DNA of 64,000 nt, from positions 62,001-126,000 of the forward strand of contig MU626275.1 in the NCBI GenBank assembly GCA_025603075.1, in the 5' to 3' direction. The notes beneath the pieces are model-generated. The model had not been told where the DNA came from. It saw nothing but the letters and a program-made list of their open reading frames with translations, and made no database searches. The first letter of the stretch is position 1, and the number at the start of each line of letters is the position of its first letter. Source of the stretch: Neoconidiobolus thromboides FSU 785 (taxonomy: Eukaryota; Fungi; Entomophthoromycota). The translations under genes were made by a program, and so were the position numbers. Positions 5,377 through 58,993 of the stretch are shown here, piece after piece.

Positions 5377-6550
5377 TATTTTACTCTTAATTTATTAAAC
5401 ATTCCAATATATTGAATATTTGGATTATGGTAATTCCAATTTTTTTGTTTTATCCATCAATTGAACCATAATAAATGGTAAATTCCAGTCGTTTGGTGTG
5501 ATTATAAAATTACAAATAAAAGTGATCATCTAACTTTTATAGCATATTTAAACCTTTCATGTTATTTTTCTACTTCTTTTAGGATAAAAAGCGAGTCAAT
5601 TTATTGTCTAATTTCTTCTTTAAATTGATCACCTGGAATTATTTAGTTTTATTCTTCGATTCGAATGTCTGGATAAATTTGAATATCCAGTTGAAATTCG
5701 AAATAACTTTTTACTGTTTAATTTAGGTCTATATTTGCAAAATTAAGCAAGGAAACAGTTATTTTCATAATACTTTGCTGAACGCAACTTTTATCATAGA
5801 TCAAAACTATTAAAAAAACTATACCTTGGATTTAAAGTAACCAAATCTAAAATATTAGAGAATATGACTGAATAAATTAATTAAATTTTCAAGTTATAAA
5901 TTATTAAAGAATACTTATAATACCGCTATCCGTAATATATGATTAAAAGAAGAGTATACATAGTCTCTCGGTTTTAGCATAAACATAACTCTTGAAAAAT
6001 ATACGAGGTCATTGTAAATAAAAAGTAAAAAGAATGTTTTTTAAAGCATCATAGCTTTTGCTTTTTTTTCTAGCTCTAAATGATTCTTATCATTATTATA
6101 TACTAGGATATGAGCACTTAAAGTAGGAAGAAATCCATCACTTTTTAAAACTACAGATTATTTGAGAAATTTTTGTAAATCTAATTATAATTATCAGGAT
6201 AAGATAAGGTCTCTTCTGCCTCATTCTATATCTAAACAAGTTAATTTGCAGTGTTTTAGAAGAATTTTAATTCTAAGCTTAGTAAGCTGTTCTAATTTTG
6301 TTTAATTTTTGAACTTTTGATCTTATTAAAAGTGGACAAAACAAAGCAAAAATTACACTAATTTGCATATACTCAAAATCGGATGTTCTTTTTAAAACAA
6401 TTCAAATAAGCAATTAGACGCTTATTTTAAAACAGAAGGAATGATGAAATATTAGATCAATTTAATCTAAAAGGCTTATTATAAGAAAACAAAAATGTTT
6501 ATTAAATAAAAACAATATTTGGTTATTAAAAACGCTTAACGAAATATCAA

Positions 6551-16859: not shown

Positions 16860-18148
16860 ATCCATGCCTTTTAATTTCCTTTTTTGTGTTAATCAGATGA
16901 TCTATAACTAATTGATTGAAATTTCGAATAGAGCTCAGATCATTTAACTATACAATTAAGCCATCTTTAAAATATGGTATTAAGCTTACAAATTGGTTTT
17001 ATTAACAACAAACTTTGTATTATGATATATAGTAACTGTAGATGGCTTAAAGAAATATAAATAATTTTGAATAAATTATGGCAAATTTTGACTCAGATAA
17101 ATAGAATTGATTGGTTAATTAATTAAATTTTGATTAAATTTTTTCAAATTGCTCCAATTAAAGCAATTCTTATTATAATGAGGATTTGAAAGTTATCTGG
17201 TCTTTTACTATATTAAGTCTTGCTCTAGTTATCTTACATACTAAGTAAAGCCCTTAAGGAAAGGAGATAAAGATCAGGCTAATGATCAGGTCAAATGTGA
17301 ATTTACTAAGCTTTCTTGTTTGACAGTCCTAACTTTTTTGTGAGTGATACCAAATATTTAAAATGTTTTATTTGTTTATTAATACATTTAATTAGGTTAA
17401 ATCTGATAGTTATAATATAATCATGATATTATCAATAAAATCACCAGTTAACTATTCCTACTTTCATTTTAAGCTTACATTAAAGCCATCAAACAAATAT
17501 TTACTTAAATTATAATTTTATAATAATTAAATAATTAGCGTATCCATTTTGTCATTTATTTTTACCTCTCTTCTTGATTCCCTTTAACTTTAAACAGTAA
17601 AGTAAAATTGAGTATTTTTTAAATGTTCCCACGCTCTATAGACCAGTACTCTAATTATAATACCAGGTTTCAGTTTTAAGAAAGTTCTTTAAAAAATCAA
17701 GCCTCTCTTTTTATATCCTAAAACCTCTCAATTTTAGCCCTTTATAAATCATGAATTAAAATCAGCGAGTTTTTATTTACTGATATTTGATTGACTTCAG
17801 TAAATTTAAAATATCATTTATCAGTAAGTCAAATTTAACTTAAGATTAAGCAATAATTATACTATTATATTTAAATCAAATAGTTAAAATGAAAATTATT
17901 AATTGATTTAACAAAATAATAAATTTTTATATTAGCTTTATATTATCTAATTTTAATGACTAAAAATAACGCAGCTATAGCTAGCATAGAAGAAAGAAAC
18001 AAAGAAAGAAATACAAGTCTTTTCAAAGCTATAAGCCCTTGTAAGAAAAAGTTATAGCAACTGCAAAATAAAGAAAGCTCCACTTTTGAAGCATTGATTG
18101 ATAAAAATAATAAAGGGAAGCGAAATGGTACCGCTAATAAGAATAAAT

Positions 18149-18927
18149 TTAAGCATTTGAATAGTGATTCTTAGGTGGAACACGGGAGGTAATAGTGGCC
18201 TTTAAAGTATCAGGCCTGGTCTTGTTTTTTGAATAACCATCTTCTGATTCAATATAGTATGCTGAAAAATCCAGAATATCATCTACTATTTTAGGATTAT
18301 CTTGATTAAGTTTGGCAAATTGATAAGCAAACTTGGTATCAGGGCCGTTTAAAGCAATAGCATTACCTTGTTCACAAACTGAGAGACAACGAGTAGGTCT
18401 TATCTCAAATTTTTTACGGAATTTCCTTGTTGGACTATTAGGTTTGCCGTGGGCTTTAACCAATTTATGATACAATATTTCTCCACTTTTAAGTTTAACT
18501 CCTTCTTTTTCTTTATCTGCTACTAATTCTTCCATGTCTTGATCTATGATTTTATTTTCAGGGTGTTCTAATTTACAATCTATTAAACTTCCGCAATTCG
18601 TTTCTTTGTAAGTGCATCTCATACACACAAATAAAACATGTCTATCCTTTAATTCTTTTTCTAATTCATTCTCTCTTATTTCTTCTTCTTTACTATCTTC
18701 ATCTTTTCCAATTATTATATCTGGTTTTCCATTCCCTTTTTCAATTTCCTAAAATCGAATGTTATAAAACTAAATATGAAATAATAAAATCTTACCTTTG
18801 GTTTAATTGAGTAAGTTTTTCTAAATTCCCTAATCTTTAAATCCAAAATAATTGTAGCGCCAATAGCAAATCCACCAAAAATAATAGCAGGTAGAAAGTT
18901 GGTTATTGATATATCCTTCAAAGCCAT
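18149..18927 (-). CDS. DUF1636-family (bacterial-type, Cys-rich thioredoxin-like fold) protein with N-terminal membrane anchor; 2 exons (18927-18796, 18748-18149), 243 aa
   Basis: 47-bp GT-AG phase-0 intron 18749-18795 joins track ORFs 18715..18927 and 18149..18628; HVLFVCMRC ... CLSVCEQGNAIAL ... ILDFSAYYIESEDG...RPDTLKATITSRVPP follows the DUF1636 pattern as I recall it. Confidence 0.75.
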
Positions 18928-18980
18928 TTTAGTTGTTTATATTTAACGATGAGAGAGATAAAATAGATAAATTCTGGATT

Positions 18981-19153
18981 TTATCAGATGAGTTATCAGA
19001 TAAATGATATCATTCTTTAGCTACTTAAGCTCAGTCAACTATTGGCTAAATTTTAATATTAATTATGAGTAAACTATGAGAACAGGTCTATTTTGTCAAA
19101 TAAATTTAATATTAAATCCTCATGAATATTTTTTTTGTACCCTTATCTGATAA
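18981..19153. promoter_or_regulatory. Cluster of three ATCWGATAA boxes (SreA/Fep1/Urbs1-type GATA sites)
   Basis: TTATCAGAT 18981-18989, TTATCAGATAA 18993-19003, TTATCTGATAA 19143-19153, 54-226 bp upstream of the DUF1636 ATG; further GATAAG pair near 19227-19240. Confidence 0.6.
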
Positions 19154-19647
19154 TGATACAGTCAATCATAAGAATATTGAGTAAACCCTTTTAATATAAA
19201 AAAGTCGACAATATTCATTATATACCGATAAGGCTGATAAGTAAAATAGTTTAAAAAGAAAACAATAATAATAATATTGAAGTAGTAATCCAACAAATCA
19301 AACTTTTAAATGAAATGTAATTAATTTCGATAATGTTACTATTATAGGGCATTATGGCTTAATAGTTAAATTATTGCTTATATTGAAAGAATATTTTGAA
19401 AAATGCAAGTTCATTTTCAAAACTCAATATTATCAAAGTATAAATTCTTTGATTTAAAACCTTAATATTTAATTTGTAAAACGAAATTCTCAAAATTTAA
19501 ATAATAATAAAGTCATTAAAAAAGGTTTAGTAATTCTTATTATAAAAATAACAGATAAACTATTGTTATAGGATTATAAATTTGTGAAGCAACAAAATAC
19601 AAATTTAATACAGGGCTTTTGTTTTATAATATAGTTAGTATATTTTG

Positions 19648-20283
19648 CTACTTTCTAGCAAAAGTTTGAAGGTTAGTATAACTACCGTTAAAGTAATCTT
19701 GGTCACCAGGGTTTGGACCACTATCAGCATATTGCCAAAAAGTATGAAAGTACCAACCAGCTGGCAAAGCTCCGGGAGAGCTCGCCTAACGGGTAACCCA
19801 TAATGAATTAGTATTCCCAAAACTAGCATTATTACCAGTACATTGTTGCCACCAACTTGTAGTAGTATAAATTACTGGATATCTACTAGTTTTAGCACAA
19901 TAAGTGTTACTAAAACCTCGAATACAATCAAGTATAGCTGCTTAAGATAAATTTCTACAATCAGCTTCGAGATCAAGGGTATTAGATAAAGTTCTACCAT
20001 CATTACCCATTCCCCACCATTAGCTATAAAATAATTAGCTTAAGCAACACCAGAAGAGGATCTACGACGAGCAAAATGTCAAGCAAAATGAATTAAATCT
20101 ACATCTATTGTACCAGTATATCGAGAATTAAATTGAAGGTTTTTATAAGTAGTGCCTTTAGTAGCTTTAATACATACAAATTGAATTTCAATTAACATTG
20201 GGTTGAGAACTACCAACATCTATTCCTTTGGGATTTGCTGCTAATACTATCTTATTAAATATAGTAACGATAAACAATTTTAT
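19648..20283 (-). pseudogene. GH25 muramidase (Chalaropsis-type lysozyme) pseudogene
   Basis: Manual translation: (ATA)KLFIVTIF signal-like, PKGIDVGSSQPNVN*, IKATKGTTYKN, HFAR, ANYFIANGG, LDLE, YPVIYTTTSWWQQCTGN, LPAGWYFHTFWQYADSGPNPGDQDYFNGS; five in-frame stops and at least two frameshifts. Confidence 0.88.
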
Positions 20284-25121: not shown

Positions 25122-26495
25122 TATATTTCTGATGTTTATTTAGAAGGATCAGATCAACATCGAGGTTGGTTTCAATCTTCAATATTATTAGCTACAGGTG
25201 CTTATGATAAATTACCATATAAAACCTTAATTACACATGGGTTTTTATTAGATGGAAAAGGAATCAAAATGTCTAAATCAATTGGTAATATAATTGAACC
25301 ACAAATAATTATTGAAGGTGGGAAAAATAAGCAATATCAACCAGCATATGGTATTGATTTATTAAGATTTTGGATTGCTAGTTCGGATTATTCAAAAGAT
25401 GTATCATTAGGAAATGATATATTAAAAATGAATAATCAAGCATTATTTAAAGTTAGAAATACTATTCGATTTATATTAGGCAATGTTAAAACAAAAAGAG
25501 AAATATCATATAAACAATTATTTCCTTTAGATCAATATATATTACATGAATTATTTCAATTGCAAATCAATTGTCAAAATTATTATGAAGATTATCAATT
25601 TCATTTAGTAATTGCAGAAATATTAAAATTTTCCAATTTTTTATCCAGTTTCTATTTGGATTCTATAAAAGATCGAGTTTATGCAGAGAAAATAGAATCT
25701 CAATCTAGAACTAACGTAGAATATGTATTATTACAAGTATTAGAAACTTATTTAAGTTTACTTGCTCCAATTACCCCATTAATGATTGAAGAGGCTTATG
25801 ATTTAAGTAAACAGCTTTTGAAAGATGAAAAAGAATCAGTGTTTCATAGAGAATTTGTTAAATTAGTAAGATTTATTTGTACAAGTTTTTTTAAAAATAA
25901 TATTGTTTTAACAATCATTTTTATTTTAGAATCAAGAATTTCATAATATACAATTAAAACAAGAATGGGAAATAATTTTACAAATTAAACAAAATATTTA
26001 TTCGTCAATTGAAAAGTTTCGAATTGAAAAGTAAGTTTATTTTAATTTTAATTATTATTATTTAATGAATATTAATTATATTATTATTTAAATTTAGTAA
26101 AATTACCAATAATTTACAATTAAGATTAAATTTTTATAATTTAAATAAAGATATGGAGGATTGGTTATTGAAATTAGAATTGAATCATCATCAATTATCT
26201 GATGTATTATTAATATCAGATATTCAATTTAAACAAACAGAAGATCTCAGTGAATTAAATTGTTTTGATATTAAAAATATTAATGGTAAATTTATTAATA
26301 AGAATATTTAATAATTATGTATTAATATATTAATTTTTATATTTTATATTCTAATTAGATTCAAACATGAATAATAAAATCTATTTTCAATTACAAAAAA
26401 TTGAAAATCAATTTAAATGTCCAAGATGTTGGAAATATCATAGTTTAATTGAAAATCAATTATGTCAACGATGTGATCAAGTAATTAAATATTAA
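22253..26495 (+). CDS. ISM1: Mitochondrial isoleucyl-tRNA synthetase, many short introns
   Basis: Presequence-like N-terminus, [15 protein letters not shown] (HIGH), [43 protein letters not shown]-terminal CPRCW...CQRC zinc finger; stop at 26493-26495. Confidence 0.93.
25068..25121 (+). repeat. (AAT)18 microsatellite encoding poly-Asn inside IleRS exon
   Basis: 18 consecutive AAT codons in frame. Confidence 0.95.
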
Positions 26496-49892: not shown

Positions 49893-50191
49893 TATAAAAA
49901 AGAAGTAAAAATATTTTTTTGAAGCATTTATTTTGTTTTAGTGTGTTTTAAAGCAAGCATATAATAAAGGAAATATTTCACTAAAATTTTACAAATGATT
50001 TAAATAAAAATAAATTATCTGATTATTTGATTTTTATATAGCTTTTATTTTACGATATATATGTAGTTTATGATCTAGTTATAAATTTAATAGTATTCTA
50101 TTTTTTTGAAAGTTTAAGATAACAACTAGGTAATTTAATTACAAAATCTACTAAAAACTAAATATTCCTTTTATTTTGATTAGTACTGTTA

Positions 50192-51793: not shown

Positions 51794-53278
51794 TCAATTA
51801 ATCTTCTTCACACTATCTGTTATTAACAAAGTCTCCGGTTTAAAAATATTTCCTTTAAACATACAATTATTCTCACATGGAGTTATATAATTTCTTACAT
51901 GTTGAAAGTAATTGTTACAATGTTTAGCATCTCCAACTTTATTTTGAACTTTTAATATATTTTTAATAACATCTGAATTTTCACAATGTGGTAATTTATT
52001 CACCCCTACTTTTAATTCATTAAAAAACAATTCGATTGGGTTTAAGAATACAGAATATTCAGGTAAAATTAATATAAATGAATTGGAGTATCTAATGGCT
52101 TCTTTTAGTTCATTAGGGATAACATGAGGATTTGTGCTATTGAATACATACACAATTTGTTTATGTCTATTTTTGGAATATAAATCCATTATAAATTTAT
52201 TGAAATCCTCTTGATTATTGGTATTCGTTTTTTTCTTATCAATTATTTTAAATGTTTCAATTTGAAATTGAGATATAGCTCCAATATAATTAATACTTTT
52301 AGGTGTTGATTCTGGTGTTAATATAATTCTTTGTCCTTCAGATGCAAACTCACCTTGATTAACAGCATGACGATTGAAATAGATTTCATCAATGTAAATA
52401 AATTCACATGTCATTAATATTTTATATTCTTCAATATATTGTTTTCTTTTTAATATTATATCTTTATCATTCCATCTATTTCGAATTTGTATTTTTTGTT
52501 TATATGTAATATCCAAATTATTTTTAAGTCGACTTATTGTGGATTTAGATATATCAATTTGTTTTGTTAACAAGAAATCTCTTACTTGTAATAATGTAGT
52601 TTCATGATTTCTCGATATATAATCATAGATAAAATCATTTGTTTCTTCATTGACTTTTTTGTTATTCCCATTTTTTCTTAAATCATCAATACCAATATTA
52701 TTGGCTATCTTCTTTTTTTTCCTACAAATTCTTGTATGAAATGTATTATAACTTAAACCTAATATTTCAGCACCCGTTTTGATTGGTATTTTTCCATCTA
52801 AAACACCATTAATGATCATATCATCATTACTTTTTTTAATTAATTTATCTTCACTTGAACATTCTTTCTTTTTACGTTTTAATAATTTCACTTTTTTTGA
52901 ACCAAATAAACTATTGAATTCAACCATTTGTTTATTAATGTCAATTATCATTTTTTTTAATTTATTATATCTTTCTTTGAGTTCTGAATTGGCACTAATT
53001 AACTTTAATGTTTCTGTTTTGTTAAGAACATCTTTACTAATTTCGTCATATATCTTTAAATCTCCAATCTCTACTTTATTAAATACATAGAATTCATTAT
53101 TCATATTATTCTGCTCGTTACTTACATTATCATATTGGCTCCTTTCAAAAATATCATCATTCATTATAATTTGATTAATACTATTGATAGATATATTATT
53201 ACCTCCCATTATATATTTTGCAAAAGAAACAAAGAAATAAAGAATAAAATTGAAATTATTTTTATACATTTGAATCAA
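51794..53278 (-). CDS. IS630/Tc1-type (DDE_3) transposase-derived ORF, up to 494 aa, second catalytic Asp replaced by Asn
   Basis: Two HTH-like segments, FIYIDE, VYVFNSTNPH (canonical DNAxxH), LPEYSVFLNPIE; real start may be a downstream ATG; no TIRs recognised. Confidence 0.82.
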   Translation of the reverse strand: MIQMYKNNFNFILYFFVSFAKYIMGGNNISINSINQIIMNDDIFERSQYDNVSNEQNNMNNEFYVFNKVEIGDLKIYDEISKDVLNKTETLKLISANSELKERYNKLKKMIIDINKQMVEFNSLFGSKKVKLLKRKKKECSSEDKLIKKSNDDMIINGVLDGKIPIKTGAEILGLSYNTFHTRICRKKKKIANNIGIDDLRKNGNNKKVNEETNDFIYDYISRNHETTLLQVRDFLLTKQIDISKSTISRLKNNLDITYKQKIQIRNRWNDKDIILKRKQYIEEYKILMTCEFIYIDEIYFNRHAVNQGEFASEGQRIILTPESTPKSINYIGAISQFQIETFKIIDKKKTNTNNQEDFNKFIMDLYSKNRHKQIVYVFNSTNPHVIPNELKEAIRYSNSFILILPEYSVFLNPIELFFNELKVGVNKLPHCENSDVIKNILKVQNKVGDAKHCNNYFQHVRNYITPCENNCMFKGNIFKPETLLITDSVKKIN

Positions 53279-58147: not shown

Positions 58148-58993
58148 TCACTGCCACAAAAAGCAACTAAGCAAACTAAAATTAACTATGAGTAAGAAAT
58201 GATTTACATTACAATATGTTGTTCCAGAGATCAAGCTTCCAATATCAAACTCGGGCTCATCATTATTTAATTTATTATTAGGCGTTAAAGTTTCTGTATT
58301 CACTTTTGTGCTTTTGGTTTCTGTTTCCTCATCCGTACTGGTTGATTCTGTTGTTTTTGTAGGTTCATCATCACTTGATGTTTCTCCTGCACTTGATGTT
58401 TCTTCAACACTTGTTGGTTCCTCCGTTGGACTAGCTTCTTCTGTTGAATGCTCTTCTTCTGTTTTACTTTCTTCCTCTTTTTCACCATCAGTTGAAGTTT
58501 CACTTGTCTCCTCAGTTTGACTTGTCTTTTCAGTTTGATTTATATCTGTCGGCGTCAATTCAGCATTAACTGGTTCCGTGATCTTAGAATAAAAACTGGA
58601 CTGACAGTTTAATAAACAGCCTGACACATCTCCGCCTCCTGCTTGACATGCAACTGAACAATCAATGTGCTCTTGGGCTAAAAAAGGGGATTAATTTAAT
58701 TTTTTATATTATCTAACTGAGCGTTAACTTACCTTGCGTCAGTATTCTACCCTGAATACACTGAGTAATGCACAGGAAGTCGGAATCGCTACATGCGCAT
58801 CCCAGACCAGCTATTATTTTTATTAATAAAACTTTCAATCAAATTAACTTTTGAAATTACCTTTAACTAATTTAGATAGTTCATTTTTATCAATTTTGTT
58901 TACATGTTTATTGATGTTACTCGCTTTTTTCTTGGTGTTACTGGCTTGAATTAGAAACAAAAAATAGAATAAAAGTGACAAGTTAATTATCAT
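58148..58993 (-). CDS. Secreted, probably GPI-anchored Ser/Thr/Glu-rich surface protein with N-terminal 8-Cys domain, 3 exons
   Basis: ATG 58993 MIINLSLLFYFLFLIQAS signal; spliced GCACSDSDFLCITQC...DCSVAC...GCLLNC; TEE-rich stalk; hydrophobic C-terminus. Confidence 0.7.

Follow-up and report, generated by a model that had tools for sequence, protein, structure and literature searches.

The DUF1636 gene of Neoconidiobolus thromboides FSU 785 is preceded by a tight group of GATA-type boxes, and the question raised by this locus is whether the boxes form a genuine regulatory element of the gene and, if they do, which class of factor is likely to read them. We examined the locus within its window, the whole 64-kb stretch of N. 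thromboides FSU 785 DNA analyzed here (~25% GC), together with the genomic loci of orthologues from other fungi.

The three ATCWGATAA sites lie exactly where the original prediction had placed them, and the accompanying GATAAG pair occupies 19226-19241 (Table 1). Two of the three are full palindromes (TTATCWGATAA). The proximal and distal palindromes share a composite layout, with an extra GATA half-site following directly or one base on. A TATATAA sequence is found at about -290 relative to the start codon. The statement that the window holds only two other perfect copies also stands: We recovered them at 26195, where the site is isolated, and at 50015, where it is placed 3′ to one gene with the next gene about 770 bp away, and neither is informative.

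The gene itself has two exons. Its second exon (199 codons) is 100% identical to the 243-amino-acid N. thromboides FSU 785 protein K502DRAFT_323117, and the full-length protein analyzed below is this database record, which is identical to the two-exon model. The modeled splice is reproduced exactly by RNA contigs of four runs belonging to two studies, so the gene is both transcribed and spliced. In the mRNA (18197-18347 and 18829-18844), the RNA contigs of runs X2-X4 differ from the window at 9-13 single bases, and in the exon 1 part two variant contigs stand side by side within one run; these single-base differences point to a second allele or strain.

Upstream lies a GH25 lysozyme-like gene, also on the minus strand (19468-19700 and on to about 20465), whose transcript 3′ end at 19468 is covered by a separate RNA contig (run X1), showing that this gene, too, is transcribed. 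Between the two transcripts is a 530-bp gap without RNA contig cover (18939-19467), and this gap holds all of the boxes. Since the DUF1636 contigs end at 18938 and the GH25-like transcript, on the same strand, ends at 19468, the gap is an inter-transcript region and not one shared with a divergent gene.

Elsewhere in the 64-kb window we found no iron-related genes. The genes seen encode a PQ-loop transporter, COX6C, a FAD monooxygenase, a DUF3752 protein, a DDE transposase, an MFS transporter, and a peroxiredoxin-like protein. The transposase domain (DDE_3) is carried by a 494-amino-acid open reading frame on the minus strand (51794-53278), probably an intact Tc1/mariner-like element. A 159-amino-acid open reading frame of matching length at 58148-58627, considered as a possible paralogue of the DUF1636 gene, encodes an unrelated acidic protein.

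Table 1. Features of the N. thromboides DUF1636 locus (positions in the window) and perfect ATCWGATAA sites at orthologous loci (centers relative to the annotated ATG)
Feature	Position	Strand	Remarks
Exon 1	18796..18927	minus	44 codons; start codon and N-terminal hydrophobic membrane helix
Intron, 47 nt, GT..AG	18749..18795	minus	removed in RNA contigs of 4 runs, 2 studies
Exon 2	18149..18748 (coding 18748..18152, then stop)	minus	199 codons plus stop; acidic linker and DUF1636 domain
mRNA extent in assembled RNA contigs	about 17920..18938	minus	minimum extent; transcription start not fixed by contigs
Two simple AGATAA cores	18956-18961, 18965-18970	plus	between boxes and ATG
Perfect ATCWGATAA site ATCTGATAA	18981..18989	minus	center 59 bp upstream of ATG
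Full palindrome TTATCAGATAA	18993..19003	both	ATCWGATAA on both strands; center -71
GATATC half-site	19006-19011		one base beyond palindrome TTATCAGATAA
GCCAATA (CCAAT box in gene orientation)	19040..19046	minus	between proximal and distal boxes
Full palindrome TTATCTGATAA	19143..19153	both	ATCWGATAA on both strands; center -221
TGATAC half-site	19154-19159		directly after palindrome TTATCTGATAA
CGATAAG and TGATAAG pair	19226..19241	plus	distal simple GATA cores
C. coronatus	-257, -211		sole two in 10.7 kb
Basidiobolus ranarum	-205, -185		sole two in 6 kb; plus two ATCWGAT cores
Piptocephalis	-636		sole one in 8.3 kb
Furculomyces	-487		
Dimargaris	-556; also -1596, -1836		
Zancudomyces	-763; also -737		palindrome at -763
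Smittium culicis	-1177, -1112, -1094		three perfect ATCTGATAA sites within 85 bp (locus L016 3313-3396)
Coemansia	-312		
Tieghemiomyces parasiticus	only at about -2 to -2.2 kb		present in both locus copies
Entomophthora muscae	none		none in 12.8 kb

Assembled contigs cannot show where transcription starts, and the boxes could therefore in principle lie within a long 5′ leader, or in some other unannotated transcript, rather than being promoter operators of the DUF1636 gene. The TATATAA sequence at about -290 would fit such an arrangement, as would the several orthologues in which 0.5 to 2 kb separate the sites from the annotated ATG. Against it, the contigs of all four runs end at or before 18938 and none extends over 18939-19467, neither the open reading frame list nor the RNA contigs place another open reading frame or transcript between the boxes and the gene, and the Conidiobolus and Basidiobolus sites are found at -185 to -257, as in N. 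thromboides. We consider a leader or unannotated transcript improbable and treat the boxes as lying in the promoter.

How surprising is the cluster? The window contains five physical ATCWGATAA sites, three of them within 163 bp. Counted by strand over the window, the motif occurs seven times against 3.5 expected from shuffled sequence, a number reached in eight of 100 shuffles and thus not significant alone. The clustering is another matter: At least three sites within 200 bp were produced by none of 1000 Markov simulations (500 of order 1 and 500 of order 3), and two full 11-bp palindromes arose in only 1.6-3.8% of them (P = 0.02-0.04). Nowhere in the window are WGATAA, HGATAR, and GATA cores denser than in the 300 bp around the boxes, which hold eight WGATAA (P = 0.002), and nine HGATAR cores fall within 285 bp. 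HGATAR density over the whole window is at chance level. Under a Poisson model with local composition, 0.005-0.02 such promoter clusters are expected genome-wide among ~8,867 promoters (gene number from bioRxiv 10.1101/2023.09.13.557621). The claim that three such close boxes make up a real cluster is borne out by these figures.

A functionless origin, either by chance in AT-rich intergenic DNA or by local duplication, draws what support it has from the composition of the window, which at 25% GC carries a GATA core about once per 90 bp with both strands counted, and from the unremarkable window-wide count of the 9-mer. It must be set against the simulations, none of which reproduced the cluster, a genome-wide expectation of at most 0.02, and the lack of any underlying repeat. 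We looked for a local duplication, MITE, or transposon remnant as the source of the sites and found no repeat longer than the motif linking them; since only the 11-12 nt motif is common to the sites, the cluster is neither a duplicated stretch nor the remnant of a transposon. The decisive evidence comes from other species and requires a description of the protein and its relatives.

The protein encoded downstream from the boxes matches Pfam PF07845 (DUF1636) with 65.6 bits against a gathering cut-off of 31.6 (E = 7e-18). We know of no organism in which DUF1636 has an experimentally defined role, nor of any description of its eukaryotic branch. An AF2 model built with 48 family members (mean pLDDT 83) begins with a confident hydrophobic N-terminal helix (residues 12-38), followed by an acidic linker modeled with low confidence and by a compact alpha/beta domain. 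The best Foldseek match of the model is 9jn8, the thioredoxin-like ferredoxin of Rhodobacter capsulatus (E = 2e-8, target TM 0.84-0.87). Next in rank come the Aquifex [2Fe-2S] ferredoxin (1F37/1M2A, target TM about 0.6) and then NuoE-type subunits. Sequence comparison also returns 9jn8 (E = 8.5e-8), the only solved relative found in this way. A search with its PDB molecule name, ORF378, gave only unrelated proteins.

In an alignment of fungal and bacterial members, Cys86 and Cys89 are each kept in 39 of 40 sequences, and Cys165 and Cys169 each in 48 of 48. These four conserved cysteines agree with a published prediction for DUF1636 (PMC4520260). The fungal protein thus resembles 9jn8, itself a DUF1636 protein, and the Aquifex aeolicus ferredoxin in its fold and in its CxxC...CxxxC cysteines. 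It differs from them in adding the N-terminal membrane helix and the acidic linker, and it has two further cysteines (Cys96 and Cys102) that are common to only some members of the alignment. The fungal gene is nuclear and contains an intron, whereas the bacterial members are soluble proteins of ~130 amino acids, often heading cobalamin operons (bioRxiv 10.64898/2025.12.19.695462). The model points to a membrane-anchored thioredoxin-like [2Fe-2S] ferredoxin as the predicted product of the gene.

Word-based protein searches, with a single sequence and then with a three-sequence profile, returned only three proteins, so an exhaustive search was needed to find orthologues. This yielded 122 relatives. 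Among the 20 next-best representatives examined, all 16 named proteins are from Zoopagomycota, and a protein atlas contains a 59-member Zoopagomycota cluster. Members come from Entomophthoromycotina (Entomophthora, Conidiobolus, and Basidiobolus), Zoopagomycotina (Piptocephalis and Syncephalis), and Kickxellomycotina (Furculomyces, Zancudomyces, Smittium, Dimargaris, Tieghemiomyces, Dispira, Spiromyces, and Coemansia). Among eukaryotic matches, the orthologue family is confined to Zoopagomycota. One 269-amino-acid orthologue (52-62% identity), presumably from an entomophthoralean fungus, is expressed (transcript contigs L002-L005; runs SRR1825860-62 and SRR1822328).

We took the genomic loci of ten orthologues and located perfect ATCWGATAA sites relative to the annotated ATG (Table 1). 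The motif is present upstream of the orthologue in eight of the ten other species. With the discovery locus left out, per-locus Poisson probabilities combined by Fisher's method give P = 4e-8. Of 21 sites in the 106 kb of sequence, 13 fall within the 12 kb immediately upstream, which make up 11% of the DNA (P = 4e-8, binomial). Controls with 300 letter-permuted motifs had a mean of 0.43 upstream sites and a maximum of four, the best control being one that overlaps with the true motif.

When every 7-, 8-, and 9-mer in the eleven upstream regions was counted blind, the same motif emerged. The top 9-mer is ATCTGATAA, present in seven of the eleven species (P = 4e-10), followed by ATCAGATAA in six of the eleven (P = 4e-8), and the ATCWGAT core occurs in nine. 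The species thus share the extended partial palindrome rather than the bare GATA core. Lack of conservation in orthologous promoters had been given in the original prediction as a refuting result; the check gave the reverse, with ATCWGATAA as the most conserved word upstream of DUF1636 orthologues across three subphyla of Zoopagomycota. GCCAATA is present in seven of the eleven DUF1636 promoters, at a P value (2e-4) that does not survive correction, and may be a partner site of the CCAAT-complex/HapX type.

The cross-species test, with its clean permuted-motif controls, effectively refutes a chance or duplication origin of the cluster, to which we now give almost no credence. Because the boxes are conserved upstream of orthologues across Zoopagomycota, we take them to be a real, selected regulatory element of the DUF1636 gene. 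On this comparative evidence the element is judged to be functional and ancient, about as old as the phylum.

Two features of the comparison count against so simple a picture. The first is that E. muscae, which has the closest sequenced orthologue (59% identity), carries no ATCWGATAA site in 12.8 kb; judged by its sequence, this orthologue has lost the motif. Instead of the ATCWGATAA boxes, the E. muscae locus (L001) carries a different, 10-bp palindrome, CTGATATCAG (5955-5966, about -45), and by eye a transposon-like inverted repeat can be seen 360-545 bp upstream (5455-5640). The second is that the assignment of the sites in Tieghemiomyces (~2 kb) and Smittium (~1.1 kb) to the DUF1636 gene depends on uncertain gene models. 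Several models in Kickxellomycotina may be without 5′ exons, so the distances to the ATG in this subphylum are uncertain. In Smittium culicis no gene is called in the 1.1 kb between the sites and the annotated ATG, and here the gene model may be without a 5′ exon or the leader may be long. Tieghemiomyces parasiticus has two diverged copies of the whole DUF1636 locus (L013 and L018) with the same neighbors. Despite substitutions in the flanks, both copies keep the ATCWGATAA and two ATCWGAT cores ~2 kb upstream, as well as another site 350 bp downstream from the gene.

Which factor, then, would read the boxes? The ATCWGATAA consensus was derived from the SreA regulon of A. fumigatus, where it is 5.4-fold enriched, and the in vivo sites of Urbs1 (Ustilago) and Fep1 (S. 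pombe) conform to it, according to a study whose authors also set it beside the two-finger GATA-1 palindrome (PMC2610380); the identification of the motif as the extended site of fungal iron repressors is therefore in line with the literature. In factors of the SreA class, two zinc fingers flank a four-cysteine region that binds [2Fe-2S] (PMC4992955). SreA homologues are present in the early-diverging Rhizopus as the GATA factors Znf4 and Znf8 (PMC12638772), and the motif has been seen in silico upstream of the Mucor rhizoferrin synthetase gene (PMC9226013). A literature search for SreA in Zoopagomycota, or for iron regulation in Conidiobolus, turned up nothing specific. To our knowledge, a SreA-type system has not been described in the phylum Zoopagomycota.

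On motif identity and this literature, we think it fairly likely that the boxes are operators for a two-finger GATA factor of the SreA/Fep1/Urbs1 class, in the promoter of a Zoopagomycota-wide gene whose predicted product is a thioredoxin-like [2Fe-2S] ferredoxin anchored in the membrane. The operators of SreA, Fep1, Urbs1, and Sre1 in Ascomycota and Basidiomycota have the identical 9-bp consensus, including the ATC extension that makes a partial palindrome, and they, too, occur as several proximal sites per promoter. The boxes described here differ from them: In N. thromboides two of the three sites are perfect 11-bp palindromes, the factor and its iron dependence are putative, and the target is a ferredoxin-like protein absent from Dikarya rather than a known uptake gene. 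The same inverted double-GATA architecture is found in the palindromic ATCWGATA of vertebrate GATA-1, which, as reported second-hand in PMC2610380, is bound by both zinc fingers (Trainor et al. 1996). This architecture implies a two-finger reader. GATA-1 is an animal developmental factor without iron input, and the analogy is mechanistic only.

The GATA core is common to all fungal GATA factors. The boxes might therefore be functional and conserved and yet be read by a factor with another input, such as nitrogen (AreA/NIT2 type), light (white-collar type), or a lineage-specific tandem-finger factor, in which case the ferredoxin-like gene would not be regulated by iron. The promoter indeed also holds simple HGATAR cores without the ATC extension, bacterial DUF1636 genes are tied to cobalamin operons rather than to iron uptake, and in Rhizopus DAP-seq experiments all GATA factors bound similar regions (PMC12638772). 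However, conservation falls on the extended partial palindrome, with the ATCWGAT core kept in nine of the 11 species and the full 9-mer ranked first among the words, and not on bare HGATAR. The ATC extension is reported as a hallmark of sites for the SreA class and for two-finger GATA-1 (PMC2610380), and HGATAR density over the window is at chance level. AreA/NIT2 sites consist of at least two close HGATAR cores and need no ATC extension; nine such cores lie at the boxes, and the conserved word is the extended ATCWGATAA. We therefore regard another input as a less probable reading that nonetheless deserves serious attention.

For a reader of the SreA class, the following scheme can be proposed. 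When iron is sufficient, an iron-loaded repressor would sit on the palindromes, one GATA half-site per finger, and block initiation 60-220 bp from the ATG. On iron starvation the repressor would leave, and the DUF1636 gene would be derepressed. Its product could then serve the acquisition, mobilization, or sensing of iron; it might, for instance, be tethered to the membrane and donate electrons for the reductive release of siderophore iron. Since the gene would be induced when iron is scarce, we infer a role of this kind rather than one in bulk iron use, and a housekeeping function, with the protein as a consumer of iron, is less likely under SreA-type control.

Derepression of the DUF1636 gene on iron starvation is, in our analysis, the best-supported reading, plausible and well motivated. 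It has to contend with the fact that Fe-S proteins are usually switched off, not on, in iron starvation. A precedent for a thioredoxin-fold protein under SreA control, serving iron sensing rather than iron use, is offered by A. fumigatus GrxD, an iron-sensing monothiol glutaredoxin that is repressed by SreA (PMC6762210). GrxD belongs to another protein family and is cytosolic, so the parallel is functional only.

Taken together, the observation of clustered boxes made in the original prediction is confirmed and considerably strengthened, and its iron interpretation is plausible: The boxes are conserved and match the SreA class exactly, and membership of the gene in the iron-starvation regulon continues to be argued from that match.

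What is new here is the protein family across Zoopagomycota and the motif that recurs upstream of its orthologues. A phylum-wide cis-element ties the DUF1636 gene to a specific class of regulator and so provides a direct functional lead. More tentatively, and with somewhat less confidence than doubt, we suggest that a SreA-type ATCWGATAA switch predates Dikarya and works throughout Zoopagomycota, with a phylum-specific, membrane-tethered [2Fe-2S] ferredoxin of bacterial type among its oldest conserved targets. If this is true, the ferredoxin would be an undescribed part of how fungi acquire or sense iron, without equivalent in model fungi, perhaps an electron donor that releases iron from rhizoferrin-type siderophores. 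Zoopagomycota include insect pathogens and the agents of human entomophthoromycosis, and the results provide evidence, at the level of sequence, that the ATCWGATAA regulatory code reaches this poorly studied phylum.
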